DNA from: Adineta vaga
Lineage: Eukaryota; Animalia; Rotifera
Reading direction: 5' to 3'
Length of the DNA: 64,000 bases
NCBI GenBank assembly: GCA_021613535.1
Contig: CP075494.1
Span: 10,230,001 to 10,294,000 of the forward strand
Shown: positions 1 to 62,822 of the stretch, in pieces
Numbering within the stretch: the first letter of the stretch is position 1
Layout: each line of letters starts with the position of its first letter
Program-made: the position numbers and the translations under genes
Notes under the pieces: model-generated
What the model was told of the DNA's origin: nothing
The model's input: only the letters and a program-made list of their open reading frames with translations
Databases searched by the model: none

Positions 1-662
1 GAGTATGTTAGAATTATAATACTTCTCAATTTTACTCGCTCCGACTCTAGGGTATTTTTGAATTCTTTTCAAATTCAAAATGAAAAAAAAAGAACGATAT
101 TTTTTCACACAACCCAGGGTATACGGACTAAACAAAAAAAACGTTTTTATTCAATAAAGACAGTCAATCTTATATTCACTTGGCATCACTAACCGTTTTT
201 ATCGTTCTCTCACGATTTCAACCCTCTCATCAGACACTGACCAGACATACTTACACTACTATCATCATAGAATCAACACAGTCATTTATTAATATATGGA
301 AATATAGATAGACATCAATGTATACTTTCATATATCCTTAATTCTGAAAAGGTTGGGTGTACGGTCTGAGAATATACAGATCTTCACATGCTCTTAAAAG
401 TTTCTATACTGCATAACAAATAAAGAGCTGAACATCGGTAGACCTAGCCTCGTCCAGATCAAGGATACATGGAAGTATACATGTATGTATAGTTTTGTAT
501 ATTTATGTATGAACAATTATAAAGACCCAGATACCCATGATTTCAGTCGGAAATGGGGTCATTTTTTTTCTTTTAAATCCAGAAAGAATTCAACTAGACC
601 ATTCTATGCTTATTCCGAGATTCAGATTGTCATAGAAGTCCGATTATTCTAGAACTCTTATT

Positions 663-1316
663 TAGGGATGACACTTTAACTTTTTTTAGAGGTTAAAGTA
701 ACTACTTTAACGGGAAAATGACGTTTCATACCACTTTGTTTTTCCGAACTGCGTGACGAAAAAAAATGATAGAAATCTTATCATGGAATCCGTGAAGCGA
801 AAGTTGAAGTAAGTAAACAGCATTTTCGAACGAATGGATGTATAAAATAAGTACTTATATCAATTGGCGGTGCCTGAGCCCACCCAGTCTTACTTGTGGG
901 TGAATTTGGCCCTCGTTGGCCCACTCTGGACAACATGTCTGCTCACATCCACATCCTCTCGGCAAGAAATTTCCGAACATCCGATAAAAATTCCCGGATA
1001 TCCGACATCCCCGAACATCTGCACGAAATCAGCAAAAAATAGTTTTCTTTTCAAACACCCGGACACGTTACCCGATGTTCAGAATGGATGGTACGAAACG
1101 TAGTTCACCCACTTTAACTTTAAAATCATAGCAAAATAAAACTATTTTGAATTTTAGAATCGTATTAAAGTTAAAATATTTTGAAGTGACTTAGTATCAT
1201 TTGCAACTGAGCAACGAACACATTTTAAATACTATAAAGAAATTTTTAATGTTAAAGCTAAAATGAAACTTTAATCACTTTTTCAAAGTAAAGTTAAAGT
1301 TAAAGTGTCACCTCTA
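663..1316. mobile_element. hAT-like MITE (copy 1) containing a nested element
   Basis: 20-bp TIR TAGGGATGACACTTTAACTT / AAGTTAAAGTGTCACCTCTA (2 mismatches). Degenerate 8-bp flanks CTCTTATT / CTCTACTT. Confidence 0.7.
712..1110. mobile_element. Nested non-autonomous TIR element with 8-bp TSD (copy 1)
   Basis: Perfect TSD ACTTTAAC at 704-711 and 1111-1118. Imperfect TIR GGGAAAATGACGTTTCATACCA / TGGTACGAAACGTAGTT(TT)CACCC. Confidence 0.75.
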
Positions 1317-1626
1317 CTCTACTTCGTTCAATGTTTCGATAAACCCTACTGGGTCAAAATTCTTGTACTTTTGATTATACTCACGGATCCAAAATTGCGA
1401 TCATTCTAACATTCTAACTCTTCTAAAACTCAAACTTATTCATTTTCATAAAAATTTCCACAATATGATAGTCTTTGGTTTCTTGTGCCCGTAATCCGTG
1501 TATAATATGCGTAGTATTTGGAATCCTATTCGAAGTTCGAGTATCAGAAGAGGACTACATGTAATTCTAACTATATTCGACAAATACTAAATTTGATGAT
1601 GTTCGTAAAGTGAATTTGTACGTTAG

Positions 1627-4600
1627 CACCAGCGTCCTATGCGCAAGCTCGCATTTGGCTCGATGAACGGATTCGATTCGACCCTGACAAACCACAACTC
1701 GCAATATACAACATGCCTTTTCTCTATCGCCTCTCCTCCGGATATACTCTATCAATATCACAACTTCGCCATGCTCTTCAACTCATTGTGCAGAAACATC
1801 TATCACTACGAACATCACTCAACTTCGATTCAGAAAACAATGTACTCATGCAACGAATTGTTGATTTAGACAACGATAATAAAGATCAACTATATGAATT
1901 CATCGAAAGTACCTATGAAACAGAGGAAGAACTCAGTCACATTATGCACACTGAGAAAGGCAATCCACATATCTTTGATCTTTCTCGAGGTCTTGTCTTT
2001 CGATGCCATCTCGTCTACTACAAACGAATATGCACAATTGATCTTCTTTCCGACAAAGATGCGATCATTTTCAATTTTCATCATGCTTTGTTCGACTTTC
2101 CATCAATGAGCATATTTCTTCATGATCTCAATCAAGCATACACAACCAGTCAACTACCTCCTGATAATGATGATACTCTTCGTTATCTTGATTGTAACTA
2201 TCTACATATATTGTCTTTTAATACCATGTTATTTGACTCTTCATTCTCTTTTTAAGATGCTACTATTGAACAAAGATGCCGATGACAGGTGCAAGCATGT
2301 TTTGGCTTGATGCGCTACATGATTGCCAACTCGATCGACCACTACCGTTACCATATGATCGACATCGTCTTTCAGATGAGCATCGAACTGGTCGTGGAAC
2401 ATCTGTTTCTTTCGATTTTGATCGGGATCTTTCACATCACTTCCTTACTTACTCATCTTCAAATGCCATCGGTCTTGAACATCTCGCACTTGCACTATAC
2501 TACGCCTTTCTATTCAAACTAACAAACGGAGAAACAGATTTATGCATCGGAAAGAACACAGATGGTCGATACAGAGAAGAGCTTAAGTCAGTCATTGGAA
2601 TGTTTGTAAATGCTATCCCATTACGATGTCAAGTGGATCCTCATTGGTCTTCGCAACAGTTAGTCATGCATGTTAATGAAATAATGACTAATAGTATGAA
2701 ATACTCGTATTTTCCTCTTCAACGTATTCTCTCTCAACATCCGCATGTTGCTAATCCTGCATTTCTCGATGCATCTTTTGGTTATTTTATGCTGGACAAT
2801 GAAAATAAAAAGAGTGAAATCATGATTGGTGGTTTTCATCTTCACGGTATGCGTTCCTCACTTAAGATTAGCGAAGAAGAAATAACGAGTAAGTTCGACT
2901 TCTTCTTCAATATTCAACATAATATTGTCACAAATCAACTATCATGCATAATCAATGGATCGCTTGATCTATTCGATACAGCAACAGTTGATATGATTGT
3001 GCAAAGATTCCATTTGTTTGCACAACATTTTTTTAAATCTGTCGATAATCGAATGAGTAGGCCAATTCATGAGCTATCAATGATATTACCAAATGAGAAC
3101 ATGGTTATGCAATCTTTGAATAATACGAAAGTGTCATTTCCTTCTGCCACGTGCATTCACCATGAATTTGTTGCTCAAGTAATACAACATCCACAAAAAA
3201 TAGCCGTTGAACTTGACGATCAATCTCTCACATTTGCGGAGCTTCTGCATCAAGCTCAAGCATTAACTCTGCATCTTCTCATACATCACGATGTTCTCCC
3301 AGGGGAAATTATCTGTCAATGTGTGGAGCGTAGTTTATCAATGGTAAACACAATTAAATGATTGTTTCATGATTATCCTATAAATAACTCATTTTCTCTA
3401 GGTTATTGGCATTTTAGCGATCGTCATGGTTGGTGGTTCATATTGTCCATTATCACCACAAGATCCTCCGCAACGTCTGAAAGCTCTTGTCAACCAAATT
3501 CATAGTCGTTTGGTTATCATTCATCCTACCACAACTGCTATGTTCGAATTGAACACAATGACAGTTAATATTGATACAGCTATGCATTTCAATGAATCGT
3601 GTAACGAAGCAAAGGTTCAGCAACTTTCAGACATACCTATCACAGCAGAAAATATTGTCTTTACAATTTTTACTAGTGGTTCAACTGGTATTCCAAAAGC
3701 GGTTTGTATAGTGTCTGAATTCATATTTATCTAATAAATGTCTGTTTCTTTTCTAGGTTCAAGTGCGTCATCGAAACTTCACTGACTTTATGCACTCGTT
3801 TGTTTTTACTGGTGTACTCGGAAAGAGCGATGTAATAATACAAATGGCACGTTGCTCTTTCGATAATCATCTTTTAAGTCTCGTTGGTACATTGATGACT
3901 GGAGCAACATTAGTAATGCTTCGACCGCAAGGCAACATGGACTTAGAATATCTCACTAGAGTGCTTGATAAAAAGCAGATTAGTGTTATGCACGCGGTTC
4001 CGTCTTTGTTGAATAGTCTTTTTCATTTTCTTAAAGAAACTGAGCGTACGTTAGCTGTGAAATGGTTACGATCGTTGTGTAGTGGAGGTTTGTAGTTTTT
4101 TTTAACGATTATTGGAGTATTATAGATTTCTTTTTATTATTTTGTTACAGGTGAAGCTCTCAATGTCAAGACAGCTACCCTATTAAAAAGTGTAGTTTCA
4201 GAGACGTGTCAAGTTCGAAATCACTATGGTCCAGCCGAAGTCACTGTGAACTGTGCTTGTCATCTAATTGATCTGACTAAAGATCAAGAAAGCATTCCTC
4301 CGGTCGACCTCTACCTAATTATCGATGTTTGATTCTGGACGAGTACTTGCAGACTGTCTATATTGGACTTGTAGGAGAACTTGTTGTTGGAGGAGTTGGC
4401 ATTTTCGCAGGATATCTTGCTCGTGCTGATTTAACGAGAGCAGTATTAATTAAAATGAATGATGAGATTTTCTACAAAACAGGTGATCTTGTTCGAATGG
4501 ACGAAGATGGGTTGATTCATTATGAAACTCGTAAAGATTATCAAGTGAAATTACGAGGTCAGCGTATTGAACTGAGTGAAATAGAACAGTGCCTATTGCA

Positions 4601-6662
4601 AACTTCTGTCGGCGCATGCATCGTCATCAAATGGGGTGATGATCATCTTGTTGCTTATGTCCAAAGCTCTGATATTACTGAAGAACAGCTACGCGAACAT
4701 TGTCAATCATATCTTCCACCACATATGATTCCATCGATGTTCATCATACTTGATAAACTTCCACTCAATGCAAATGGAAAAGTAGATAGAAAACAACTTC
4801 CGCTACCCAATGTATCATCCCTGAGCATGCTATCACCAGATGATTCTGATGTTCCACATAGTGAGTTAGAACAAAGTGTGCACGACATCTGGATTCGTGT
4901 TTTACGAAGTAATGAAAAGCAGATTTCTACAAGTACGAATTTTTTCAGTATTGGTGGTCATTCACTTTTGTTTATTGAACTTTATCATCGTTATCAATCA
5001 TTTTTTGGCTTCAATAGTCATGAAGTGTCTATTGGTTCATTTCTCCAACAACCAACTATTTTCCAGCATGCACAATTACTTTGTTGCATCCCGATGAACG
5101 ATTCGGAATCTACACAATGGCATACGTTGCATATACAGCAAGGTATTGAACTTAATATGAATTACTGAGATATAAATAGTGTAATGGTCTTTCTGAATTT
5201 GCAGGTATTGCGTCTTTTGCTCAAGAACGAATTTTTCTCGATGAAAAGGTTCGATTCTCTAATCAAATTGCTATATACAATGAATTGGCTGCTCTGCGAG
5301 TTATTCAAGGTTCATTGTCAGTAGATCGTCTAACACAAGCTTGTCGATATGTCCTTGGCAAACATAAGATACTACGCACATCTCTAAGTTTCAATGAGAA
5401 TGATGGAATTTTGATACAATACATTACTGACAAACATAGAACATTTACAATAGTTACAAATCAAACATTTGAGAATGAGAATGAAGTTCAGAATATTTTT
5501 TATCGTGCGACAATCGATCCTGATCTATTCGATCTATCAACTGGTCGTGTTTTTCATTGTCAAATAATTTGGCAACAGAACTCAATCGATATAAATGAGA
5601 ACAGTGAACTTATTAAAGACAATGATGTGCTCATTATCGGCTTTCATCATGCAGCAAGCGATCGATCATCTCGTCCAGTATTTTACAGCGATCTATATCA
5701 TGCTTATAATAACAATTCAATATGGTTCGACGAAGAGAAATCATTGCAATACATTGATTATAGTGTTCATGAACGTCTAATCGATATGACACCATCACGC
5801 GAGTTTTGGCGTTCTCAACTAGCTGGCTACCATGTTGAGCATCACTTAGCGTTGCCTGTTGATCGACGTCGTTCGCCCAGTGAACAACGATCTGGTGCAA
5901 GTTCTATTGCTCAGATATCATTGGACAATGATGTTTCAACCGCATTCTTGGAATATGCTTCATCACATCAAGTGACACCATTTCAACTAGGTCTTGCTAC
6001 ATTCTATGCATTTTTGTTCAAGTTAACACATGGTGACAATGATATATGTGTTTCGACCCTAAATGCTAACCGATACAGACCTGAGTTGCAGAATATGGTC
6101 GGAATGTTTGTTACAACATTACCACATCGAATTCAACTTGACCAACAGTGGACTTTTCATGAACTTGTTGAAATTGTGCACGATAAATGCTTATCGATTC
6201 TTGAACACTCTTATTATCCTTTGCAGCAAATTATAACTGACATGCGTCTGAATCAATCAACTGTTCCATTTCTTGAAACGTTGTTTGACTTTGCTACTGG
6301 AACCTCGGATAGCAATCGGACATGTTTACAAGCAGCAACTTTGGAATCTATGCCAGTAGAACAATCTACTCATGTTGCTAAATTTGATGTCAAGTTTTCG
6401 TTTGTCTATGACCCATGGTTAAAAGATAATAAGTTATCATTTAATTTAAATTGTTCAAGTGATTTGTTTCACGGGACAACGGTTCTGACGATGGCTCGAA
6501 GATTCAATCATTTTCTTCATCAAATTTTTTCAACAAATCTAAATGACTCTCAAGTCGACACTCATACTCGAACTTTGAATAAGTGTAATATTATTCTACC
6601 AGAAGAAGATTTAGAAATTCAAAAGCAAGGCTTCTGTCGACAATTAACTGATACAAAGGAAG
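1627..6662 (+). CDS. NRPS unit 1 (C-A-T-C), with two 1-bp frameshifting deletions relative to its duplicate
   Basis: Acceptor ttag at 1623-1626. C motif HHALFDF, A core motifs, T FSIGGHSLL, second-C exon 5205-6662 (HHAASDR). One base is missing at about 2273 and at about 4300 compared with unit 2. Confidence 0.85.
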
Positions 6663-9600
6663 GTATGTTGATATTTCAAGAGAAAGCTGCTAGCATGTGA
6701 GAGATTGAATCGATAAAAGCTTGAAAATCTCTCCTGCTTGGAAAAATCGCTTTATTGCTGAAAAGAATTCGTTATAGTACAATGATAAACTTCGCATTCT
6801 TGACTAACTTTTTGCATTGTGAGATCTTAGCGAAAGCATGGGACGTCGCCCAAGAAGTTTTTATTGTTATAACCGGGTAATGGGTTCCTTTTGCGCGTAT
6901 ACTGTCGCTTTCGTTCACATCTATCACTGTTATACGCTCTGTAAAAGCTTATTATCGCCAGCCTTAACGAAGATATTCTGAACAAAAAATTAACAGAAAA
7001 AGGACGCGGATAAAAGTGAAGGTGTAGCAAAAGGAGGAACACGTATTATTATGATTTGAACACTCTTTGCATCTACTCTTACGCCTACTCCAGCAGCTTT
7101 TATACCCATTGATTATGGTTGATCTTTGTTTTTCGATCCTTGAAATACGAAAGATCAAAGGACTTTGATATCGCTCGAGAAAAGCTGATCTGGATAAGAT
7201 AGATCTCAGTTACCTCTAAATCTATACGCTTGCTTTTGCTCCTATTCACCTGCATCCAAACTCTCGTATCGAAGATGAAGATTTGTTTTTATAGATCATT
7301 CTCTTTCTCGTACAGAAGAGTCTTGCAAGAAAAAACTGTTTGCTTACTTGCTTGTTTGTCTGTGCGCACTTCACTGATTGGTACAAAATCAATGTAAAAA
7401 TAAAAAGAATTATTTTCGATAAAACCTGAACGAAGGTTAATCAACATCAGAGATGAACACGGCGCAACATGTTATGTCCTCCTCTGTTCTGATGAACGAC
7501 AGAACAAAACAAAAATCGAAAGCACTTCCTGTATAGAGGGCAGGACAACACAGTAAAAGCTCGAATGTGAAAATCGTCCGGACCGACATAAACATCCAGT
7601 TTAGCGGGGCAATCGTTACAGAGAAAGTTCAACTAGTATTTGCACTTTACAGTTACTTTTCAAAAATAACAATTTTTTACTCGATTAAAAAAACATTATT
7701 TCATACGTTTGAAGCAACTGTAAAGTACTACTCCTGGGTTCAACAAAAACAAATCCACCCATCCTTTTGCATTATTGTCTACGTTTTTTAGTTAGATTTT
7801 ATTACTTTATTCAATGAAGTATAATCGATTGCGACTAAACATTTATCAATACAACAGATACAAATGATAAATAAAGATTCTCTTAAATATGTTGCGAATA
7901 ATCATTTCTTCTTTTAAGAATATCAGGTATATTTGCTATTGAAACACAAAACTTATCTTTCAATTTTCGAAAAGATAAACTGCGGTCACTGTCTCTTGAT
8001 AAATCAACCTTTTACTCCGAATGCATATTATGCCTAGACGTCATATTGAGACAAGTATCTTTCATTCTTTATGTCGATCTTGATCGAATATAACTTTACC
8101 ATCAGTAAAATTCAGAACATTGACTTTCACAATATCGGCTATATATTTAGATGTGTGTTTCGGTGAGGATGACGAGATAAGCAGACGATTAGACGATGGT
8201 ATGAGTGTTTGCTAGCGTAACAAAATGACGGATTCGCAGAGTAGAGTTCTAACGATGAATACATAGCTACAGTTCATCTATGCGACCTGTTCACCGGGCA
8301 CTATCTTAGCTTTCTTTGTTTTCTGATGGATGATCACTCCTATAGGAGTTGTGCTAAATAAAGAAAAAACACGATTGTGAGTATACAGATGAAACAATAC
8401 ATCATCATATCGAAAGACCAAGGGAGAAAAGCGGATCATGTGGATCCTTTTGTATTCGGCAGATACGCTTGGATCCTATATATTCTATGAATTCTACCGG
8501 ATCATTTTGGGTCGTATGGATTCTCTTTGATTTTATCGGATTCTCCTTGATCTTGAGAAAGGGATAAGGCATATCCTAGGATATAACAGAAACCGATAGG
8601 ATTCAACAGAATCTGATAGGATCCAACAGAATCCATAGAGTTCGCTTTTCCCCCCTTGTGATAAATTGATTGAGCTGTCATAAACTCTTTTTGAACGTTT
8701 ACTGTTCTCCACTTATTTTTTTCAGTGCTAGTGGTCTTTTTATACACCCCTAACTTCTTTACCTCAAGTTCGGTTAAATTGTTACTGTTCTCATTATTCT
8801 AATAATTATAAATTCAAGAGTATGTTAGAATTATAATACTTCTCAATTTTACTCGCTCCGACTCTAGGGTATTTTTGAATTCTTTTCAAATTCAAAATGA
8901 AAAAAAAAGAACGATATTTTTTCACACAACCCAGGGTATACGGACTAAACAAAAAAAACGTTTTTATTCAATAAAGACAGTCAATCTTATATTCACTTGG
9001 CATCACTAACCGTTTTTATCGTTCTCTCACGATTTCAACCCTCTCATCAGACACTGACCAGACATACTTACACTACTATCATCATAGAATCAACACAGTC
9101 ATTTATTAATATATGGAAATATAGATAGACATCAATGTATACTTTCATATATCCTTAATTCTGAAAAGGTTGGGTGTACGGTCTGAGAATATACAGATCT
9201 TCACATGCTCTTAAAAGTTTCTATACTGCATAACAAATAAAGAGCTGAACATCGGTAGACCTAGCCTCGTCCAGATCAAGGATACATGGAAGTATACATG
9301 TATGTATAGTTTTGTATATTTATGTATGAACAATTATAAAGACCCAGATACCCATGATTTCAGTCGGAAATGGGGTCATTTTTTTTCTTTTAAATCCAGA
9401 AAGAATTCAACTAGACCATTCTATGCTTATTCCGAGATTCAGATTGTCATAGAAGTCCGATTATTCTAGAACTCTTATTTAGGGATGACACTTTAACTTT
9501 TTTTAGAGGTTAAAGTAACTACTTTAACGGGAAAATGACGTTTCATACCACTTTGTTTTTCCGAACTGCGTGACGAAAAAAAATGATAGAAATCTTATCA

Positions 9601-12600
9601 TGGAATCCGTGAAGCGAAAGTTGAAGTAAGTAAACAGCATTTTTCGAACGAATGGATGTATAAAATAAGTACTTATATCAATTGGCGGTGCCTGAGCCCA
9701 CCCAGTCTTACTTGTGGGTGAATTTGGCCCTCGTTGGCCCACTCTGGACAACATGTCTGCTCACATCCACATCCTCTCGGCAAGAAATTTCCGAACATCC
9801 GATAAAAATTCCCGGATATCCGACATCCCCGAACATCTGCACGAAATCAGCAAAAAATAGTTTTCTTTTCAAACACCCGGACACGTTACCCGATGTTCAG
9901 AATGGATGGTACGAAACGTAGTTTTCACCCACTTTAACTTTAAAATCATAGCAAAATAAAACTATTTTGAATTTTAGAATCGTATTAAAGTTAAAATATT
10001 TTGAAGTGACTTAGTATCATTTGCAACTGAGCAACGAACACATTTTAAATACTATAAAGAAATTTTTAATGTTAAAGCTAAAATGAAACTTTAATCACTT
10101 TTTCAAAGTAAAGTTAAAGTTAAAGTGTCACCTCTACTCTACTTCGTTCAATGTTTCGATAAACCCTACTGGGTCAAAATTCTTGTACTTTTGATTATAC
10201 TCACGGATCCAAAATTGCGATCATTCTAACATTCTAACTCTTCTAAAACTCAAACTTATTCATTTTCATAAAAATTTCCACAATATGATAGTCTTTGGTT
10301 TCTTGTGCCCGTAATCCGTGTATAATATGCGTAGTATTTGGAATCCTATTCGAAGTTCGAGTATCAGAAGAGGACTACATGTAATTCTAACTATATTCGA
10401 CAAATACTAAATTTGATGATGTTCGTAAAGTGAATTTGTACGTTAGCACCAGCGTCCTATGCGCAAGCTCGCATTTGGCTCGATGAACGGATTCGATTCG
10501 ACCCTGACAAACCACAACTCGCAATATACAACATGCCTTTTCTCTATCGCCTCTCCTCCGGATATACTCTATCAATATCACAACTTCGCCATGCTCTTCA
10601 ACTCATTGTGCAGAAACATCTATCACTACGAACATCACTCAACTTCGATTCAGAAAACAATGTACTCATGCAACGAATTGTTGATTTAGACAACGATAAT
10701 AAAGATCAACTATATGAATTCATCGAAAGTACCTATGAAACAGAGGAAGAACTCAGTCACATTATGCACACTGAGAAAGGCAATCCACATATCTTTGATC
10801 TTTCTCGAGGTCTTGTCTTTCGATGCCATCTCGTCTACTACAAACGAATATGCACAATTGATCTTCTTTCCGACAAAGATGCGATCATTTTCAATTTTCA
10901 TCATGCTTTGTTCGACTTTCCATCAATGAGCATATTTCTTCATGATCTCAATCAAGCATACACAACCAGTCAACTACCTCCTGATAATGATGATACTCTT
11001 CGTTATCTTGATTGTAACTATCTACATATATTGTCTTTTAATACCATGTTATTTGACTCTTCATTCTCTTTTTTAGATGCTACTATTGAACAAAAGATGC
11101 CGATGACAGGTGCAAGCATGTTTTGGCTTGATGCGCTACATGATTGCCAACTCGATCGACCACTACCGTTACCATATGATCGACATCGTCTTTCAGATGA
11201 GCATCGAACTGGTCGTGGAACATCTGTTTCTTTCGATTTTGATCGGGATCTTTCACATCACTTCCTTACTTACTCATCTTCAAATGCCATCGGTCTTGAA
11301 CATCTCGCACTTGCACTATACTACGCCTTTCTATTCAAACTAACAAACGGAGAAACAGATTTATGCATCGGAAAGAACACAGATGGTCGATACAGAGAAG
11401 AGCTTAAGTCAGTCATTGGAATGTTTGTAAATGCTATCCCATTACGATGTCAAGTGGATCCTCATTGGTCTTCGCAACAGTTAGTCATGCATGTTAATGA
11501 AATAATGACTAATAGTATGAAATACTCGTATTTTCCTCTTCAACGTATTCTCTCTCAACATCCGCATGTTGCTAATCCTGCATTTCTCGATGCATCTTTT
11601 GGTTATTTTATGCTGGACAATGAAAATAAAAAGAGTGAAATCATGATTGGTGGTTTTCATCTTCACGGTATGCGTTCCTCACTTAAGATTAGCGAAGAAG
11701 AAATAACGAGTAAGTTCGACTTCTTCTTCAATATTCAACATAATATTGTCACAAATCAACTATCATGCATAATCAATGGATCGCTTGATCTATTCGATAC
11801 AGCAACAGTTGATATGATTGTGCAAAGATTCCATTTGTTTGCACAACATTTTTTTAAATCTGTCGATAATCGAATGAGTAGGCCAATTCATGAGCTATCA
11901 ATGATATTACCAAATGAGAACATGGTTATGCAATCTTTGAATAATACGAAAGTGTCATTTCCTTCTGCCACGTGCATTCACCATGAATTTGTTGCTCAAG
12001 TAATACAACATCCACAAAAAATAGCCGTTGAACTTGACGATCAATCTCTCACATTTGCGGAGCTTCTGCATCAAGCTCAAGCATTAACTCTGCATCTTCT
12101 CATACATCACGATGTTCTCCCAGGGGAAATTATCTGTCAATGTGTGGAGCGTAGTTTATCAATGGTAAACACAATTAAATGATTGTTTCATGATTATCCT
12201 ATAAATAACTCATTTTCTCTAGGTTATTGGCATTTTAGCGATCGTCATGGTTGGTGGTTCATATTGTCCATTATCACCACAAGATCCTCCGCAACGTCTG
12301 AAAGCTCTTGTCAACCAAATTCATAGTCGTTTGGTTATCATTCATCCTACCACAACTGCTATGTTCGAATTGAACACAATGACAGTTAATATTGATACAG
12401 CTATGCATTTCAATGAATCGTGTAACGAAGCAAAGGTTCAGCAACTTTCAGACATACCTATCACAGCAGAAAATATTGTCTTTACAATTTTTACTAGTGG
12501 TTCAACTGGTATTCCAAAAGCGGTTTGTATAGTGTCTGAATTCATATTTATCTAATAAATGTCTGTTTCTTTTCTAGGTTCAAGTGCGTCATCGAAACTT

Positions 12601-24600: not shown

Positions 24601-27600
24601 ATCATGCTTATAATAATAATTCAATATGGTTCGACGAAGAGAAATCATTGCAATACATTGATTACAGCGTTCATGAACGTCTAATTGATATGACACCATC
24701 ACGCGAGTTTTGGCGTTCTCAACTAGCTGGCTACCATGTCGAGCATAGCTTAGCGTTACCTGTTGATCGACGTCGTTCGCTCAGTGAACAACGATCGGGT
24801 GCAAGCTGTGTCGTTCAAACATCCTTCGACAAAGAAATTTCTGCATCATTCTTGGAATATGCTTCATCACATCAAGTGACACCATTTCAACTAGGTCTTG
24901 CTACATTCTATGCATTTTTGTTCAAGTTAACACATGGTGACAATGATATATGTGTTTCTGCTCTGAATGCTAATAGATACAGACCGGAATTGCAGAACAT
25001 TATGGGCATGTTTGTTGCAACATTACCACATCGAATTCATCTTGACAAGCAGTTGACCTTTCACGAACTTGTTAGAGTTGTGCACGAAACATGTTTAGCG
25101 ATTCTTGAGCATTCTTATTATCCTCTGCAACAAATTCTAACTGATCGGCGTCTGAATCAATCTCCTGTTTCATTTCTTGACATAATGTTTGAGTTCGTTA
25201 CTGGGTTTTCTGGGGAGGGTCGAAACTTCTCGAACAGTTTGTACTTGGAAAACGTATCATTAGATCAACCACTCCAAATAGCTAAGTTCGATGTCATGCT
25301 TTGGTTTAGCTATAATCCATCATTAAACGATGAGAAGTTATCCTTCAGTTTGATTTGTTCAAGTGATTTGTTTGAGGTGTCAACGGTCAGAATGATAGCT
25401 CGAAGATTTAATCATTTTCTTCATCAGATTTTTTTAACAAATCCAATTGTCGATCAAGCAGATGCTCATGCTCGTTCTCTCACTAAATATAATCTTATTC
25501 TACCAGAAGAAGATTTAGAAATTCAAAAACAAGTATTCTGTCGACAATTAACTGTTATAAATGAAGGTACGTTAATTTAAAATGTGTGAAATCTACTAGT
25601 ATTAAAGAGAATTGAGTCGATAATAGTTTGGAAATCTGTTTTAATTAGAAAAAATCTGATTGTTTTCCATACATGAACTTTTGTTAGTGATTATGGAAAT
25701 GAAAGAAAAATCACTATTTCACATTTCTTAGATTTATGGGATCTTGAACAATAATCTGAATGCACTGATTTATTATATAGGTTATAATGTTTGTTACTTT
25801 CTGTTAAAATTTTATGCATATTAAGTATAATTCTACACGAATCACTATACTCTATTACTAATGAAGACATGACAAATTTGCAGTACTACAGTTGCGTGAG
25901 TTTTGTAGCATTTTATTCCCATGCCGTCCAGTGTCACGGTGACTTGTTTTATCTGAACATCGAAGCATTCTTTTTGTTCGACTACATGTTTTACTTTGAC
26001 AAAGATATTGGAATAGTGAAGGACATCAACATGTTGTAATGCAAATGAATTTTGTCTGATTGAACTATTAATGATTATGACTAAATACATTTTGATATCG
26101 CGATATAAACCAGTGACAGAAATATTTCAAAATAAATCACATCTACAGCCCAATAAAATACTGTAAGACGCAGCTTTGTTCCAAATACTTTAAAAGAAAT
26201 AATGCTTTTTTAGAAATATTAAATAATTTTTACATACGATGGAATCCACGGAAGATTGCACTGTAGTCTTCTATGAAATAGTTAAGATTTCTGATGAAAA
26301 ATAGAGAAAGCCGTGTGTCATAATTAGTCAGTCTCACATATTCGATGGTCGATCTATTTTTACTATTGCTGTTCCGATATATTCCTGATGGTGATTCTAC
26401 CGCACTCTGTAGTCTGAAGACATACCATAATAATTCTCAAACAATTATTCTTTTTCTAACATAGCACCTGCTTCTTATGCACAAACTCGACTTTCGTATG
26501 ATGAGAAAACACCTTTTCATCCAGATCAGTCTTCGACAATCAATTACAACATGCCATTTCTTTATCAGCTATTACCAAAACACACTTTATCTATCAAGCG
26601 ACTTCGGCAAGCTCTAGAACTGTTGGTCATCAAACACGAATCATTCCGAACTTCTCTCATTCTCCCCCAAGAAACCAATATACTCATACAAAAAATCGTA
26701 GATCCTGCTTACGATAAGTCTGATCTGTTTAAGTTTCTCGAGAGTACATATGAAACGATCGAACAATTGAACGACATCATTACTAGTGAAAAGGAAAACT
26801 CGAAATGTTTTGATTTACCTCAAGGCCTCGTGTTTCGATGTCATCTCATTTACTACAAACATATCTCTGATAACGATATTCTTTCTGGTAGCGATCGAAT
26901 TATTTTCAACTTCCACCATGCTGTATTCGATATTCCATCAATGAATATTTTTCTTCGTGATCTCAATGAAGTATACACGATAGGTCAACTACCGAACGAT
27001 GACAATGATAGGTTGCGTTATATCGATTGTAAGCATACATGGATTGTATCGACCCATTTAATGTTATTTTTCTTTGTTTATATTTAGATACTATAATCGA
27101 ACAGCAAATGCCAATGACTGGTGCAAATATGTTTTGGCTGGATGCTCTGCAGGATTGTCATCTCGATCGATCTCAGCCACTACCATATGATCGACACCGT
27201 CTTTCCAACGAGAATCGAACTGGCCACAGCATTTCGACATCTTTTGATTTCGGTCATGATCTCTCCTATGAATTTCTCGCTTATACATCGTCTCACAATA
27301 TTTCACTCCGGCAACTGACACTTACTGTCTATTATGCTTTTCTATACAAATTGACGAATGAAGAGACAGACATTTGTGTTGTGATGAACGTTAACAATCG
27401 ATACAGAGATGAACTCAAATCAATCATTGGATTGTTTGAGAATATCATTCCATTGCGTTGTCAAGTTGATCCTCACTGGTCTTTTCACCAATTAATTCAA
27501 CATGTTTGCGAAATAGAGGAAAGTTGCGTCAAGTATTCGTATCTTCCCTTTCAACGCATTGTCAATCAACATGCAAATCCTACAGGAACTGCATTTCTAA

Positions 27601-30600
27601 ATATCTTTTTTCATTTTCAATCAAGTGAAAGTCAACATAATCAGACTAAAGTGATGATAGGAGACGCTAGACTCTATCGTTTATCTGACCCGGTCGAGAA
27701 AACTAATCATGATATGATAAATCAGTTTGATTTCTTAGTTTTCATCGAACACAACGCAAGTGATAATCGACTATCATGCACAATCAAGGCGTCACTCGAT
27801 TTGTTCAGTGAAAATACGGTTTCTACGATTGCACATCGATTCCATTGCATGATACAAAGTATGGTTCACCCGACAAATGATCAAATGACAACACCAATCT
27901 ACGAATTATCATTCAGATCACCGAATGACGAATTGTTAATGCAATCAGTGAATAACACAGAAATGAAGAATTCATCTGTTTCCTGTATTCATCATGAGTT
28001 TGTCCGTCAGGTGATCGCACATCCACAGAAACTAGCAGTTGAACTTGACGAACAGTCTCTCACGTATTCAGAATTGTTACATTCAGTTCAAGTTTTGTCT
28101 CTACGTCTTCTGAACGAATATCGCGTTGTTCCAAACGAAATCATCTGCCAGTGTCTTGAGAGAAGTCTTGCGATGGTAAGTTGATGAAAGGTATTAACCA
28201 TAGTCTTAGTGAAATATTGATATTGATTAGGTCATTGGTATGATGGCAATTGAGATGATCGGTGGTGTATATTGTCCTCTATCACCTCGAGATCCGGAAC
28301 AACGTTTGTATGCACTTGTACAACAGACGAATAGTCGTCTTGTACTGGTGCATAGTTCAACAATAAACAAGTTTCCCCTTTCTTTCATTATACTAGATAT
28401 TGATATTCTAACGATTCGTGTAGATCTCGAAGATGTTTCTAGTATTGTTCAACTATCAAATATTATAGTCACGCCAGATAATATTGCCTATATTATTTTT
28501 ACCAGTGGATCAACTGGGATACCGAAAGCTGTGAGTGATGTCTTCAACGATGAAGTGACAAAGCAGTAATATCCATTTCTTTTATAGGCACAAATTCAAC
28601 ACCGAAACGTGAGCGCGTGTATGCATTCTATGGTGACAATTGATGCTGTCAATCAATACGATATGGTCATACAAATTGCACGTTGTTCATTTGATGTTCA
28701 TGTTCTAGACATAATGGGAACATTGATGATTGGTGGATCTTTGATAATGCTACATCCTGACGGTATTCTAGACCTTGAATATTTCACATCAGTGCTGCAA
28801 GAAAAACAAATCACTTATATTCAAGCAGTTCCGAGTTTGCTTAAAGCATTCTTTACATTTCTGAAAGAAACATTTCAATACTCTCAAGCAAAATGTTTTA
28901 GATCTGTCTGTAGTAGTGGTTAGTGGTTATAAATCACATTTTTATCTCAATAATCTCTCTTTCTTTTCGTAGGAGAACCTTTCTCACTCGACTTAATGTC
29001 GTTAATAAACAGTTACGTCACAAGCAAATGTAATATATGGAATTTGTACGGTCCCGCTGAGACAATAATTTGTACATTTCAATGTGTCAATTGGTCAGAG
29101 GATATAATAAAAATTCCAATCGGCTTGCGTATGCCTGACTATCAATGTCTGATATTAGACAAATTCTTACAAAAACTTACGCTAGATCAGGAGGGTGAAT
29201 TATTTGTAGGAGGATTAGGGGTCTTCGCTGGCTATCTTGCACAAGATGATTTGACAACGAAAGTACTCACTAATATTGAAGGTGCGAATTTCTATCGCAC
29301 AGGTGATCTTGTTCGAATGGACAGCAATGGACTTCTCCATTACATTGGAAGAAAAGACTTTCAAATCAAACTTCGTGGTCAACGTATCGAAATCGGTGAA
29401 ATTGAACAGTGTTTGTTGCAAACTTCCATCGACGCATGCATCGTCATCAAATGGGGAGAAGATCACCTAGTTGCTTATGTTCAAAGTTCTCATATTACCG
29501 AAGAACAACTACGTGAACATTGTCAATCGCATCTCCCACCACATATGATTCCATCGATGTTCATCATACTTGACAAACTTCCTCTCAATCCAAATGGAAA
29601 AGTAGATAGAAAACAACTTCCTCTGCCCGAATTTTCTCATCTATCATCAGCACATTTGGGTGAAGATGGTAAACCAACAACACCAAGAAATGAAACTGAA
29701 CGCATCATTCATCACATTTGGTGTGATATACTAAAGAGAAATGAGATCTCAATCGATACAAGCATCTTCAGTATTGGTGGCCATTCATTACTCATCATGC
29801 AACTCTTTCATCGATACAAGATAGAACTTCATCTAGAAGAAAACATCCTCTCCATTGCTGATCTCTTTCAACATTCATCCATCTCAGATCATGCAAGACT
29901 CATTCAAGAGACATTATGCATCCTAAGAACGGACGACGAGCATCACTGGTATCCACTATATCTCAGTCAAGGTAAAATACATGTTACATACCTTTGAACA
30001 ACTATATTTCTCTCTATTCGTTTATTTATAGCTAAAGCATCATCTGCTCAAGAGCGCATCTTTCTCGATGAACAGATTCGTTTCTCATCCGCAATCAGCC
30101 AAAACATCTATGCCATCCCACATATCTACCGCATTTCACCACACAATGATGAGCTTTCAATCTCACGGCTTCTTCGTGCTCTCCATGCTGTCGTCACAAA
30201 GCATAACATCCTTCGAACTGCACTCTATCTCGATACAGAAGGTTCTATTGTACAACAATGCTTAGAGTCGAATATCTCGTCTATCGATGGACCAGGACCA
30301 TATGGTTTCACGATCATCAATCTTCAGAATGATGATCGTCAAATCAATGAAACTGTGAGAGAGATTCAAAATCAACCTGATCTAGTTGATTTGTCACAAG
30401 GACGTGTTCTTCATTGTCACATTCTTCGCCAGTCGCGCCTCGATGAAGATCTACTCACTGATCGTGACTTCATACTAATCAATATCCATCATGCAGCATT
30501 TGATGGTGCATCCACATCCACTTTTCTCTCTGATCTTGCTCTTGCCTATGAGAATAGCCAATCGCTACTGAGAGATAAAAGTACATTACAATACATTGAC

Positions 30601-33600
30601 TATTCTGTTCATGAACATGTCATGGATACAACATTAGCGCGTGACTTCTGGCATTCTCATCTCGAAGGATACAATCTTCAGCATCCTCTCGCCCTACCCA
30701 TGGATCGGCAACGTTCATCCACTACTCGACGATCAGGTCTTGCATCTACAGCTCACATCGTGTTCGATAATGATGTTGTTGAAGCCTTTCTTAACTATGC
30801 ATCATCACATCATCTCACACTCTTTCAACTCGGCTTGGCTACATTCTATGCATTTCTCTTCAAACTGACGCATGGTCAAGATGACTTATGTGTTGCATCG
30901 ATTAATGCGAATCGATATCGAAGTGAACTAGTGAACATGATTGGAATGTTTGTTTCGACACTGCCATATCGTGTTCAACTGGATGCTCATTGGTCATTTG
31001 ACGAACTTGTTCGACATGTGCGAGAGAAGTGCCTATCTATTCTTGAAAATTCTCACTATCCACTGCAGCAAATCTTGGCTGATTTTCATCTGAATCAATC
31101 GAATGCTTCATTTCTTGAGACAATGTTCGATTCTATCACTGTATCTCCGACTGTTCATCGTTTTAGTTTGAATGGCGTTGAGTTGGAACAAGTATCAATG
31201 GGCGGAGGAGCAGGTGGAGGATTGAAGTTTGACTTCTCTGTTACATTTGTTCACAATAAAGCAGTCAGCGACAAACAACTATCATGCTACATTGCGTGTT
31301 CACAAGATCTATTCGATGTAGAATCAGTCGATAAAGTAGCACAACGATTGCATTGTATGATACAACGAATGTTTTCAATCATGGGACATCACATAGAGAC
31401 CACAATCTGCGAATCTTCACTGATATTACCAAATGAACGCGTGTTGATGCAATCGATGAACAATACCGAGACGCAGTATTCTTCCGCTTCGTGTATTCAT
31501 CATGAGTTTGTTCGTCAAGTCGTCGAGCATCCACAGAAACTAGCAGTGGAACTCGATGAACAGTCACTCACCTACACTGAGTTGCTTCATCACGTTCAAG
31601 TTTTGTCTTTGTATATTTTGGGGGAATATTATATTATACCTGGTGACATCATTTGTCAATGTGTAGAGAGAAGCGTATCAATGGTAAGTTTGATTGATAG
31701 AATATATGTGGATATCACTAATGTATGAATGTTGATTAGGTCGTTGGTATAATGGCAATCGAGATGGTTGGTGGTGTATATTGTCCATTATCACCTCGAG
31801 ATCCAGAACAACGCTTGCATGCACTTGTGGAACAAACGATGAGTCGTCTTGTTCTTGTTCATCATCTAACGAAGACCAAGTTCTACGATAATATCATGTC
31901 ACTGGATATAGATTCGGTCTGGACTGTCGAAGAGAAAGACGTGCATGATATTAATCGACTATCACGAATAAGAGTGACACCTAACTGTCTTTCATACATT
32001 GTCTTCACTAGCGGATCAACAGGAGTTCCCAAAGGAGTATGTGGAAGACGTTTCTGATATGTCGCAATCTTTATTTTACTTTGTTCAGGTTCAAGTTCGA
32101 CATCGAAGTCTGGTAGGATGCATTGATTCTCTTATTCAAGTTAAATTATTCACAAACAAAGATACTATGTTACAAATGGCTGGTTGTTCATACGATGTGC
32201 ATATACAAGAAATAATAGGTGCACTGACGATTGGTACAACTACCGTCATGTTGCACCCTCATGGAAACATGGACTTTGAATATGTCATCAGAATCATAGA
32301 GAATAAACAAATATCGTATATGCAAAGTGTTCCGGCCTATCTCAACAATATGTTTGACTTCTTGAAAGGAGAAAGTCATGAGAGTTTGAGAACTTTACGA
32401 ACTCTTGATATTGGTGGTAAGTGCATGATTCCAGTTACTAAAATATCATTTCGATATTTCCTAGGAGACATCAGTACTATTCAGTTCTTGCGAAAGTTAC
32501 TCGGTTATTTGCCTAAAAGTGTTCTCATATGGAACGTGTATGGCCCAGCAGAAGCTACTATTGACTGTACCAGTCATCTAGTCAATATGGCTGTTGACAA
32601 GAATTGTGTTCCTATCGGACGCGCACTTTCCAATTATGGATATTTGATCTTGGATAATCTGCTGCAACCTGTTGTCGTTAATCAAGATGGTGAACTATAT
32701 GTTGGAGGGGTGGGTGTCTTTGCAGGATATCTTGGTCGTGATGATTTGACTTCCAAAGCATTAGCATCGATCAACAACTTGACATATTATCGCACAGGTG
32801 ATCTTGTTCGAATAGATGACAATGGACTTCTTCATTACATTGGAAGAAAAGACTTTCAAATCAAGCTACATGGTCAACGTATAGAAATCGGTGAAATTGA
32901 ACAATGTTTACTTGGTACATCTATATCTGCATGTGTTGTAATGAAATGGGGAGAAGATCATCTCGTTGCTTACATTGAAAGTTCTGACATCACTGTAGAA
33001 GAACTACGTGAACGTTGCCAGTCACATCTACCACTACATATGATTCCGTCCAAGTTCTTCATACTCGAGAAACTTCCACTCAATGCTAATGGAAAGATAG
33101 ATCGAAAAGAGCTACCGCCACCTCGGATGTCGAATGTCGAAACGACTCCGCGCACGAATGTGGTGATATTAACTCCACTTGAAGAACAGTTGTGGAGTAT
33201 ATTCAAGCGCAGTTTTCATAGCGAATCGACTGATATTGAAATGTCTTTTGGACTAATGGGTGGCACATCATTAGATGCGATTCGAGCATTGTCATTGATC
33301 CGACAAGAAATAAGTACTAAGGTTGATATTGGGCTATTGTTCGCTAATCCTTCTGTTCGACAACTGGCACGTGTTATTGAACCATTGATAGTGATAGAAG
33401 ATAATTTGACGAATAGTTCTATCAGTTTACAAGTAGATGACGATCATGACAGATCAATGTCATGTTTGTATATTGAAATATTGGGTATTATATTACTTGT
33501 ATGTCAATGGTTTTTCCCAATGTGGTTAGCTTATCAGTTTCACTCATTTTTTATATTGTTAGCTGTACCTGTTTTTCACCTTGTAACATATATTATTAGT

Positions 33601-35479
33601 CAACATTTATTACTTCGCCGTGAAAAGATAATGTATCAAAGAGATAAGTTGTATTCATGGCAATACTATCGGTGGTGGTTTTTAAATACTATGTGGTCGA
33701 TTAATAACTCGTTTTGGTTAAAACATTTGCTGGGTACACCGTTTTACAATTTGTATCTTCGCTTATGTGGTGCTGATGTTGGGCGTAACTCACATATTTA
33801 TACAACATCAATCGATGCCCCTTGGTTACTTAAAGTAGGTGATTTTACATTTATTGGTGACGAAGTTATACTCTCGAGTTTATCATATCAAGCGAACACA
33901 TACACCCTTGGTCGAATAAGTATCGGATCACACTGTTGTATCAACACACGTTCTGTACTTTATGAAGATGTGAAGATAGAAGATGGTGTATTTATAGAAC
34001 CAATGTCCACTGTCTCAGGGCCGGTACCCAAATCGAACAATGATATTTTTATGAAGAATCAAGTCGTATCATGGAAACAATCATTATATCAATTCGGATG
34101 TTTATCCATTATTTTCGTTATCCATATTTTAATCCTATTATGCACATACAGCATCTATTCTTCCTTTCGATCTCTAATGCTACCATTACCTATTTGCATT
34201 GCTCTAGTCTGGCTCACATGGGTTTTGATAAGTTTCTTTATTGCTTTAATTCTGTTGAAATTTATTGTTGGATCTGTCACAGTAGAGCATTGTTCAGTCA
34301 ACTCTTTCTATTATATGCACAAGATATGGTTGCGTCAAATGATTATAACATCGTTTCATCATTCTTTAGATGTGATACCTTCTTACAGTGTTGTTGCATC
34401 TATTATTTTACGATGGTTAGGTGCACAAATTGAAGACGATGTCAGATTTGCTGAATTTCGACAAATTTTATATTTTCCAGCAAATTTACTTTTTGTGAAG
34501 AGTGGTGTAACAACATTTGGTGGGGCTAAACTTGCAACTTTTGAGATGACAAAAGATGGTCTCTGTCGTCTTGATGAAATCCAGCTTGGCTCAGGCACAA
34601 ATCTTACCAATTGGTGTACATTAATGCCAGGTACTCGACTCGTATCAAACACAATGGTCGGAAGTTTAACATTAGTTACACGGCAAACTGTTAACAGTAA
34701 CATCAATAGTACATTACTTGGTATTCCAGCGCGTGAAATGCCATTCCAATTATCTGATAGTCCTCGTTCAAGTCAAAATAATCGGCCGCCTACAAACTCT
34801 ATTTCTATCCAAGTTCTATTACTCACTTGTCTTAGTTTCTTTATTAGCAAATTGTTACTTATTGCTTTGTACTCCTTATTTTCATTTTTTGCCTCTCCAT
34901 GTATTCATATAATATTCACTTGCACTATTTATCATTATTCAATTTGGCTTTCGAAAAATCATTCGCGATTCTCCTATTCGAAAACTATCAATGTTTTACA
35001 ACAAATAATTCATATGTTTTTAATGGATTTTTATACCTTTGTTGGGCCATTTCTATCGAGAACACAATATCTTGTATATGTTTTTCGTGGTTTTGGGGCT
35101 CGCATTGGATGCGATGTCATCTTGCCCGATATTGGTTGTCTCACTGATCCTTATCTAACTACTCTTGGCAATCACATACGTCTGCAAACAGGCGCTCACA
35201 TTCAAGTAATATATCTTCCGTAGTTAGGTTGTAATTTGTACTAACAAGTTCTGTGTTTTTTTTCCAATTTAGTGCCACACATTCGAACAACGCCTATTAA
35301 AACTAGCACCTGTTGTGATAAATCATTCAAGTGTATTAATGAGTAACACCTTAATACTTCCTGGATCAGTACTACAAGGACAAAATCGTATATTACCATG
35401 GACATTGATTATGAAGAACGATCAGCTACAACCGAACACTAGCTGGTCTGGTGTACCAGGTCACAGAACCAGACAATAA
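1627..35479 (+). CDS. Giant multi-exon non-ribosomal peptide synthetase (5'-incomplete): C-A-T-C / C-A-T-C / C-A-T-C / C-A-T-C-A-T-Pls-like terminal membrane domain
   Basis: ORF fragments carry C (HHxxxD, GMFVxxxPxR), A (FTSGSTGxPK, YGPAE, YxTGD, KLRGQRIE, NGKVDR) and T (GGHS/GGTS) motifs. Frame-compatible phase-1 long introns 6663-10446, 15509-20507 and 25567-26464 join the units (GAA G|gt...ag|CA CCx GCx gives E-A-P-A-S-Y-A-Q). Stop TAA at 35477-35479. Joining into one transcript is inferred from splice signals only. Confidence 0.8.
8419..8658. mobile_element. Possible small MITE
   Basis: Imperfect TIR CAAGGGAGAAAAGCG / CGCTTTTCCCCCCTTG and internal GGATCC/TAGGAT repeats; no TSD seen. Confidence 0.4.
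8818..13623 (+). repeat. Direct segmental duplication, copy 2
   Basis: Matches 1-4801. Identity stops abruptly within NGKVDRKQLP (A10 motif / A-T linker). Confidence 0.95.
9480..10136. mobile_element. hAT-like MITE (copy 2) with nested element 9529-9930
   Basis: Same TIRs and TSDs as 663-1316; duplicated with the segment. Confidence 0.7.
10447..15508 (+). CDS. NRPS unit 2 (C-A-T-C), intact
   Basis: Introns 11014-11076, 12165-12222, 12523-12577, 12909-12971 and 13974-14035 restore a continuous frame (LRYLDYA, ERSLSMVIG, PKAVQVRH, SGGEAL, LTQARASFAQ). Second C has HHAAFDG. Confidence 0.9.
16239..16651. mobile_element. pogo/Tc1-mariner-like MITE
   Basis: TIR CAGTAGAACCTCTAATAGTAGACAC / GTGTCCACTATAGAGAGGTTTTACTG, TA on both flanks, internal TATAGTGGACA repeats. 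Confidence 0.85.
17060..20253 (-). mobile_element. hAT DNA transposon with decayed transposase
   Basis: 15-bp TIR CAGTGTTTTATCCAG / CTGGATAAATCACTC; 8-bp TSD AGCGTAAT / AGCGTAAC. Confidence 0.85.
17362..19679 (-). pseudogene. hAT transposase pseudogene (ZNF862/ZMYM1-like)
   Basis: Five fragments broken by frameshifts or stops, with SDEGTD, DGVAVFSG, IHCYAHALQL, DTRWLS and the C-terminal dimerisation motif PISTAAVERDF..MNRVLTKLRNRL. Confidence 0.85.
20508..25566 (+). CDS. NRPS unit 3 (C-A-T-C), intact
   Basis: Introns 21108-21162, 22251-22304, 22605-22660, 22992-23049 and 24043-24108. Motifs HHALFDF, FTSGSTGMPK, YGPAETT, SVGGHSLL, HHAAFDR. Confidence 0.9.
26465..33400 (+). CDS. NRPS modules 4 and 5 (C-A-T-C-A-T)
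   Basis: Introns 27029-27087, 28176-28230, 28531-28587, 28919-28972, 29972-30031, 31684-31739, 32037-32088 and 32417-32464. T4 SIGGHSLL, T5 FGLMGGTSL. End coordinate approximate. Confidence 0.9.
33430..35479 (+). CDS. NRPS terminal domain of Pls/PosA type (TIGR02353-like): transmembrane helices alternating with three beta-helix-like repeats
   Basis: Three repeats LLGTPFYNLYLRLCGADVG, ILRWLGAQIEDDV and VFRGFGARIGCDV, separated by hydrophobic helices. Last exon 35273-35479 (after intron 35206-35272) reads CHTFEQRLLKL...LIMKND...WSGVPG, matching the recalled HLFEDR...LVMKGE...W.G.PA end of this family. Start approximate. Confidence 0.85.
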
Positions 35480-35529
35480 CTATTTCTGTACATTTTCTAT
35501 GAAATCTGTAAATAGATCACTACATGTTT

Positions 35530-41200: not shown

Positions 41201-41316
41201 AGAGGACGCGGACCTTGTTCACCCGGGCGACGTCCGAGCCGGTATGGTTTCGTGCTAATGTCGTTCATGGTTAGTTTCTTTCGTCTTTTTGTTTTTACAG
41301 GCGGCGGTATCTGCAC
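38252..41316 (-). CDS. RTE polyprotein: AP endonuclease + reverse transcriptase (single ORF split by a 1-bp deletion at about 40150)
   Basis: APE motifs GTWNV, GISEVRW, GDWNA, SDH; RT motifs NYRTISL, FIDFQKAFD, QGDPLSP, FADD. Adding one A in the homopolymer at 40148-40152 restores KTKKPWISEDTLKL into the second ORF. Confidence 0.92.

Positions 41317-60687: not shown

Positions 60688-62822
<2,135 letters not shown>

Follow-up and report, generated by a model that had tools for sequence, protein, structure and literature searches.

The window analysed here is a stretch of 64,000 nucleotides of chromosome 5 of the bdelloid rotifer Adineta vaga (Av20 assembly, CP075494.1, positions 10,230,001 to 10,294,000), and it contains the 3' end of one nonribosomal peptide synthetase (NRPS) gene; coordinates below count from its first letter, and negative values lie before it. 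On the + strand, from 1614 to 35476, Pfam searches of stop-to-stop frames returned a recurring series of Condensation, AMP-binding, AMP-binding_C and PP-binding matches, and five modules of an adenylation (A) and a thiolation (T) domain were recognized between 1627 and 33414. Core motifs are conserved throughout, with the A10 motif GKxDR in all A domains, GGxS in all T domains (GGTS in the last one) and HHxxxD in every condensation (C)-type domain, and they are collinear, as is characteristic of modular type I NRPSs. The last T domain runs into a membrane domain resembling the terminal domain of Pls and PosA, and no thioesterase (TE) or reductase (R) domain was found with Pfam in any frame scanned in the window.

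The modules are arranged in four cassettes, all on the + strand, in which Ca and Cb designate the first and second condensation-type domain; searches within the window were run exon by exon. The window opens in the 3' part of a long intron between an upstream cassette, U5, and cassette 1 (1-1626), a 99.9% copy of the stretch just before the window that ends at the acceptor ...TTAG/CACCAGC (1626/1627). Cassette 1 (1627-6662) has the order Ca-A-T-Cb according to Pfam (Ca 1627-3050, A ~3170-4790, T ~4875-5060, Cb ~5205-6662) and is followed by a predicted phase-1 intron of 3784 nt (6663-10446) with the conserved donor GAAG/GTATGT and acceptor TTAG/CACC. The same order is repeated in cassette 2 (10447-15508; T ~13709-13906, Cb 14036-15508 with canonical HHAAFDGAS) and in cassette 3 (20508-25566; T ~23772-23963, Cb 24117-25566 with HHAAFDRTS), and between them lies a predicted phase-1 intron of 4999 nt (15509-20507), again with conserved donor and acceptor. 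A remnant of a hAT transposase (PF05699 dimerisation region, 17362-18631, - strand) is located within this intron. Cassette 4 (26465-33414) is reached through a GT..AG intron of 898 nt (25567-26464), which is spliced out in frame in transcript contigs, and it carries the extended order Ca-A-T-Cb-A-T (Ca 26465-27888, A ~28000-29610, T 29707-29904, Cb 30032-31375 with HHAAFDGAS, A ~31450-33105, T 33229-33378). The Pls/PosA-type terminal domain (33415-35479), delineated by TIGR02353 and Hexapep matches, hydropathy and an AlphaFold2 model, closes the gene.

Each cassette junction reads T-Cb-Ca-A, so that one condensation-type domain directly follows another. HHxxxD is retained in both, as are the C1 and C5 motifs of C-type domains, and both resemble true C domains; the Cb that directly precedes an A domain carries canonical HHAAFDG. 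The Cb-Ca junction (..NE/APASFAQARIW..), with both His motifs, was also found in gene models of Adineta steineri and at another A. vaga locus, and it is therefore conserved and no accident of this locus. Assignment of Cb as an epimerisation (E) domain, which would give C-A-T-E modules, was considered and rejected, since Cb has the C-type C1 (SxAQxR) and C5 (IGMFVxT) motifs and its solved relatives are true C domains; the best of these are Txo1/2, TycC and AB3403, and the A-T-E protein TycA was absent at E 1e-5. All these C-type domains are labelled Condensation_LCL in a published table (PMC11258130).

The frame from 31978 to 35220, open for 1081 codons, takes in the last A domain from Pfam position 180 onward, the T domain after it and some 590 more residues, so that the terminal domain follows the last T directly, in the same frame and as the final domain, the position it has in Pls and PosA. 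A terminal GT..AG intron of 67 nt (35206-35272) is followed by a last exon of 68 residues (35273-35476, stop 35477-35479) that corresponds to positions 627-694 of the TIGR02353 profile. This profile, the NCBIfam model for Pls/PosA, matched frame residues 523-949 (profile 42-482, E 7e-29, 100.7 bits). Hydropathy revealed three hydrophobic helix pairs at frame residues 493-546, 701-774 and 941-985 (33454-33615, 34078-34299 and 34798-34932), and a beta-helix unit follows each pair. In an AlphaFold2 model of 33415-35205 calculated with 38 aligned relatives (predicted local distance difference test, pLDDT, 88.5; predicted template-modelling score, pTM, 0.89) the chain is built of a unit that occurs three times and is composed of paired helices, two short helices and a left-handed beta-helix (LbH). 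The model superposes on 582-584 residues of bacterial and fungal PP-binding+Hexapep clusters of the ESM Atlas, at template-modelling (TM) scores of 0.81-0.87 by query, and one of the matched clusters is named 'Pls/PosA family non-ribosomal peptide synthetase'. Hydropathy, AlphaFold2 and the Hexapep match agree in the six-helix, three-LbH-unit topology of Pls/PosA, and a published PosA model likewise has helix-pair/beta-helix repeats (PMC10522769). Searches of the PDB by sequence and with Foldseek returned no solved Pls-type domain, only single LbH acetyltransferases with one unit each. As modelled, the terminal domain is a divergent member of the Pls/PosA terminal-domain fold, located where a TE or R domain normally stands.

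Evidence that the cassettes belong to one transcript comes from four public runs of three studies, whose reads were aligned on 25400-31399 only (6,000 letters); the runs were taken as RNA because their contigs of the locus are intron-free. In all four runs, 25600-26399 had a depth of zero and a GT..AG joint was present at 25564^26463 (with the cut moved by +2, intron 25567-26464), by which cassette 3 (Cb) continues in frame into cassette 4 (Ca). Five short introns of cassette 4 were also recovered in RNA (27029-27087, 28176-28230, 28531-28587, 28919-28972 and 29972-30031). An in-frame stop at 29995 was considered as a gene boundary and rejected, as it falls inside the last of these introns, which is 60 nt long, removed in RNA and conserved in position in all four cassettes. 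A further tail-to-head join was provided by the loose end of one transcript contig, which links a cassette-1-type tail to the sequence starting at 1627 and 10447, and 1627 is taken as an exon start because the contig enters the exon exactly at 1627/10447. Over the whole locus, nine Cb tails end ...GAAG/GTAYGT and nine Ca heads start ...AG/C(A/T)CC(A/T)GC, all in one codon phase (phase 1; in codons ...GAA G/gta...ag/CA CCN GCN...), with inter-cassette introns of 0.9-5 kb. A division into four separate genes, as the gaps of this size and the stops after each Cb might suggest, was rejected on the strength of the in-frame 898-nt splice and the nine homologous junctions.

A path search on the genomic sequence found a stop-free path from 10447 to 35476 with short introns of 45-80 nt and two long introns, for which cassette 2 needs four short introns and cassette 3 needs three. 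Loose limits gave spurious introns; with tighter ones, three RNA-proven introns were recovered to the exact position and two others approximately, and the search therefore serves only as a test for an open path. The path through cassette 1 requires spurious introns. Of the words sampled from 25500-35480, a fraction of 0.83-0.84 is present in the runs with spliced contigs, and because this is about the exon share, the terminal region is probably also transcribed, its exons included. A protein search with the cassette 2 Cb exon for a transcript-derived protein spanning the 5-kb intron gave no near-identical match, the best identity among the matches listed being 63%.

The same-strand array extends upstream to about -48757, some 48.7 kb before the window. 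A motif scan of the whole locus counted 12 A, 13 T and 20 C domains with catalytic motifs kept in all, and the gene order from 5' to 3' is T-Cb; Ca-A-T / C'-A'(oxidase (Ox)-like insert)-T-Cb; Ca-A-T-Cb cassettes; and Ca-A-T-Cb-A-T-terminal domain. The first open reading frame (ORF; -48757 to -47135, +) encodes three tandem repeats of ~126 residues, a Ser/Thr-rich linker and a T domain (SLGGDSL) that no A domain precedes; the repeats had no Pfam or Atlas match, and a Protein Atlas search with the N-terminal 450 aa of the gene gave no usable match. An ORF of 1902 residues (-42994 to -37289, +) encodes the end of an A domain, a T domain, a divergent C-like domain, an A domain with a SagB-like insert and a T domain, and it is intronless within an otherwise intron-rich gene. 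The insert in A' resembles a SagB-family dehydrogenase (TIGR03605, E 1.3e-8) and is oxidase-type, and the C'-A'-T module fits thiazole formation, the assignment of its C-like domain as a heterocyclisation (Cy) domain being putative. Between C'-A'-T-Cb and the window lie the upstream cassettes U2 to U5; one upstream cassette is extended to Ca-A-T-Cb-A-T-Cb, and several of the cassettes are tandem copies of recent date.

Nowell et al. 2024 (PMC11258130) list the locus in their Supplementary Data 9 as cluster or region5.7 (10167295..10284502), with 19,229 aa, coding-sequence pieces from 10181315 to 10265223 (window position 35223), 'NRPS_term' as the sole extra domain tabulated and the remark "2 frameshifts, but apparently expressed". 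The words 'transmembrane', 'Pls' and 'polylysine' do not occur in the main text of that paper; the terminal domain is only tabulated in its supplement, whereas the present analysis describes its kinship to Pls and its topology, the layout of cassettes and introns, and the C domains in tandem. On balance we consider it probable that the locus is one very large, spliced and expressed NRPS gene of about 84 kb and about 19,000 residues, of which the window region is the final ~40%, and that its chain is released at the membrane by the Pls/PosA-type terminal domain, this estimate being a joint one for both parts.

An earlier note on this DNA, made from its letters, had proposed an animal-encoded synthetase at 1627-35479 in which at least five A-T modules end in frame, with no TE or R, in a Pls/PosA membrane domain with three repeated units. 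Five modules on the + strand were indeed recovered with Pfam and the A10 and T motifs, the frames scanned held neither TE nor R, and the three units were recognized as helix pairs and beta-helices in the AlphaFold2 model. The kinship holds by TIGR02353 and by fold (TM 0.82-0.87), though at 100.7 bits against a cutoff of 423, and the multi-module gene is spliced and expressed in transcript contigs. The shared frame was confirmed for four modules (10447-35476), but cassette 1 is broken by a 1-nt deletion at 4300; similarly, 35479 is the stop and 1627 an exact exon start, but an internal one, as the gene begins far upstream of the window.

An exhaustive HMMER search with the terminal domain yielded 1113 matches. 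The best named ones (34-63% identity) are bdelloid, from Rotaria magnacalcarata, R. socialis, Adineta steineri and A. vaga itself, the latter (UJR17611.1, P0028) being a protein of 3646 aa with three modules and the same ending; canonical single-module enzymes of ~1300 aa showed 24-30% identity, and the other matches were from metagenome or run assemblies. In an IQ-TREE phylogeny (posterior mean site frequency model, PMSF) the window domain falls into a clade of 18 bdelloid-type rows with a Shimodaira-Hasegawa-like approximate likelihood ratio test (SH-aLRT) support of 100. The sisters of this clade are P0128 and P0070+P0126 (SH-aLRT 99), and the canonical Pls/PosA set, including two A. vaga loci above the TIGR02353 cutoff and the chytrid pair P0110/P0125, is located on the other side. 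The tree thus points to a divergent clade that is separate from canonical Pls/PosA and has so far been seen in bdelloids alone. TIGR02353-like loci number at least 15 in the A. vaga genome, and the sister clusters 5.1, 5.4, 6.6 and 6.7 bear the same NRPS_term label as 5.7 in the published table (PMC11258130). Two canonical Pls/PosA terminal domains occur in A. vaga at C1:11882475-11884550 (+) and C1:880858-882927 (-), with 508-513 bits; in the tree they nest among the ~1300-aa single-module enzymes, apart from the bdelloid clade, which suggests a separate origin.

Multi-module lines with a Pls-type ending are not unique to this gene or to animals. P0070 (GCA_017884045.1), on a eukaryotic contig near histone and seven-transmembrane (7TM) genes, has the order F-A-T-C-A-T-terminal, where F is a formyltransferase, and P0110 from the chytrid Siphonaria sp. 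JEL0065 has four or more modules in 6612 aa and a relative, P0125, in Obelidium mucronatum. These proteins share with the locus several modules followed by a TIGR02353-like domain but are without the Cb-Ca cassette design, and the chytrid domain groups with the canonical set, only P0070 being sister to the bdelloid clade. In Marchantia polymorpha, MpACOS18 (P0154, 2465 aa) combines an amine oxidase with A, T and a Pls-type terminal domain. The claim to novelty in the earlier note was therefore too strong, given that the locus and its NRPS_term are in PMC11258130, that at least 15 such loci exist in A. vaga and that the ending occurs in other bdelloids, chytrids and another eukaryote, but its statement that no characterised example of the architecture was known stands, as none was found. 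A published survey of Pls/PosA enzymes was limited to lengths of 1100-1800 aa (PMC10522769), and a search of the literature on TIGR02353/IPR012728 or lysine synthetase in rotifers gave nothing relevant.

Pls of Streptomyces albulus, which makes epsilon-poly-L-lysine, and PosA of Acinetobacter baumannii, which makes delta-poly-L-ornithine, have in common with the locus the T-terminal order with no TE or R, six helices in three pairs, three LbH units and an approximately three-fold symmetry. They differ in having a single A-T module within ~1300 aa, where the locus has at least four and probably twelve modules before the domain, and the domain of the locus belongs to a separate clade and scores at a quarter of the family cutoff. 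A further difference concerns the A domain. In PosA, D217 and E221 bind the diamino acid, and Glu221 is essential (PMC10522769). In the A4 motif of the last A domain of the locus, SYDVHIQ, the Asp is kept and Gln stands at +4 in place of the diamino-acid-binding Glu, as judged by motif mapping. Its Stachelhaus positions, mapped provisionally by motif, would read DVQQDGVIDK. The closest solved relative of the last A-T is module 2 of LgrA (264 bits), while the A domain of Pls reaches only 85 bits, and judged by its sequence the last A domain is of an ordinary elongation type, unlike that of Pls. The linear gramicidin synthetase LgrA-D of Brevibacillus, to which this module belongs, is also among the best solved relatives of the C domains, its LgrC is the best Swiss-Prot match of the Av13 gene model, and LgrA begins with a formyltransferase, as does P0070. 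However, Lgr has E domains and a reductase ending, whereas the locus has neither E nor R, a second C-type domain after each T and a membrane-domain ending.

The terminal domain of Pls and PosA joins the carrier-bound aminoacyl thioester, with formation of an amide, to a side-chain amine that belongs either to free lysine or to the growing chain, which is likewise free (PMC10522769). By analogy we infer that the terminal domain of the locus would anchor the synthetase in the membrane, take the full-length peptidyl thioester on the last T as donor and free the finished chain by transfer to a nucleophile that is not enzyme-bound, as Pls does with lysine or the amine of the free chain. This acceptor could be an amine or a hydroxyl, and transfer would probably take place once per chain and probably be coupled to export. 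Membrane-anchored chain release appears to be the likeliest role, and a single release step is favoured because the last A domain is not of the Pls type; iterative tailing and block oligomerisation are ranked below it.

That the terminal domain nevertheless works iteratively, as in Pls, and makes a homopolymer tail of the last amino acid or joins peptides head-to-side-chain into block oligomers, is in our estimate unlikely. Repeated transfer would be mechanistically possible, as the acceptor of Pls is a free chain (PMC10522769) and the fold and topology of the domain equal those of the polymerising enzymes, but the adjacent A domain scores far better against LgrA than against Pls and has Gln at the place of the essential Glu221 of PosA, the clade of the terminal domain lies apart from all canonical polymerases, and a tail would require the last module to be reloaded repeatedly while eleven upstream modules wait. 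The poly-amino-acid tail offered in the earlier note is weakened by the same LgrA-like A domain and its Gln. We also doubt that the array is decaying, that is, that duplications and frameshifts have inactivated the long frame and at most fragments are translated. By blastn, window positions 1-8817 are a 99.9% copy of the preceding 8.8 kb and 1-4808 are a 99.8% copy of 8818-13630, and among these near-identical copies there are three frame-breaking indels, two 2-nt deletions in U5 (-6872 and -6088) and, in cassette 1, the loss of one nucleotide at 4300 within the A domain; two other differences of cassette 1, T>A at 2254 and a deleted nucleotide at 2271, lie within the short Ca intron. The two frameshifts in the published table (PMC11258130), the low expression and the transposon remnants in and beside the gene would agree with decay. 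Yet all eight differences between the U5 and cassette 1 copies are indels, with no substitutions, and cassettes 1 and 2 differ by one substitution and four indels. Because the differences are all or almost all indels, they suggest a consensus error in the long-read assembly of a tandem repeat rather than decay, and very recent duplication with slippage is suggested as an alternative source of 1-2-nt indels among the copies. Moreover, every other exon is open, none of the 12 A, 13 T and 20 C domains has lost its catalytic motifs, the splice sites are conserved, and splicing was correct in three studies.

Because every cassette starts and ends in the same intron phase, cassettes could also be alternative units, whose skipping would yield a family of shorter synthetases all ending in the membrane domain; the nine homologous phase-1 donors and acceptors permit any in-frame combination, but in the 6 kb examined only serial joins were seen, with donor 25566 spliced to 26465 in all four runs, and we hold this reading to be quite improbable. 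Bacterial or fungal contamination, which the microbial type of the NRPS domains and the LgrC match of the Av13 model might bring to mind, is refuted for practical purposes by the many short GT..AG introns spliced in RNA, by a GC content of 35-40% similar to that of the flanks, and by the location of the gene inside a 16.9-Mb chromosome near CCDC47, coronin and animal retrotransposons. Several points weigh against a single large gene with membrane-anchored release all the same. As assembled, the module fifth from the end is out of frame and the full reading frame is closed, and the joins across the 3.8-kb and 5.0-kb introns are predicted from the sequence. For the Av13 model that matches the gene (g56482), published data show low expression, and the 100.7 bits of the terminal domain fall below the curated TIGR02353 cutoff of 423.1 bits, at about a quarter of it. 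Since the clade is separate and long-branched and scores low with TIGR02353, the chemistry of its terminal domain may not be the one used by Pls. The pairing of Cb and Ca condensation domains lacks an explanation in the model, and no characterised multi-module enzyme with a Pls-type ending was found in the literature or among the relatives searched.

Chain release determines the product of an NRPS, and the known devices for it are TE, R, terminal C domains and a few others. A membrane-bound, acyltransferase-like end with six helices and three beta-helices on a twelve-module line would be an uncharacterised alternative among them. Endings of this kind occur in no fewer than six A. vaga clusters and, beyond A. 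vaga, in other bdelloids, chytrids and at least one further eukaryote, and they are therefore taken to define a class of enzymes and not a lone oddity. The locus had been published with its length and with a label for its terminal domain (PMC11258130); what is new is the interpretation of this end as a membrane domain for release that has the Pls fold and belongs to a bdelloid clade of its own, together with the arrangement of cassettes and introns and the pairs of adjacent C domains. A wider and rather speculative proposal is that bdelloids, and perhaps chytrids and other eukaryotes, have co-opted the Pls-type domain as a general offloader of long NRPS or polyketide synthase (PKS)-NRPS lines, with whole peptides being ligated to a free acceptor or oligomerised at the membrane during export and same-phase introns letting splicing vary the number of modules; if true, it would add a mode of release that no assembly line has been described to use. 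A role in defence against pathogenic fungi has been connected with the NRPS genes of bdelloids (PMC11258130), and the product of this gene and its exit from the cell would bear on that defence and on the engineering of membrane-coupled peptide export.

Beyond the NRPS stop codon, the window contains a non-LTR (long terminal repeat) retrotransposon with endonuclease and reverse-transcriptase ORFs (38252-41316, - strand), 2.8 kb downstream. An exon for the membrane region of an ABC transporter, a possible exporter, is located 13 kb downstream (48215-48805, - strand), within the published cluster bounds. Ordinary animal genes follow further on, namely CCDC47 and coronin at 57992-59146 (- strand) and 60735-61472 (+ strand).

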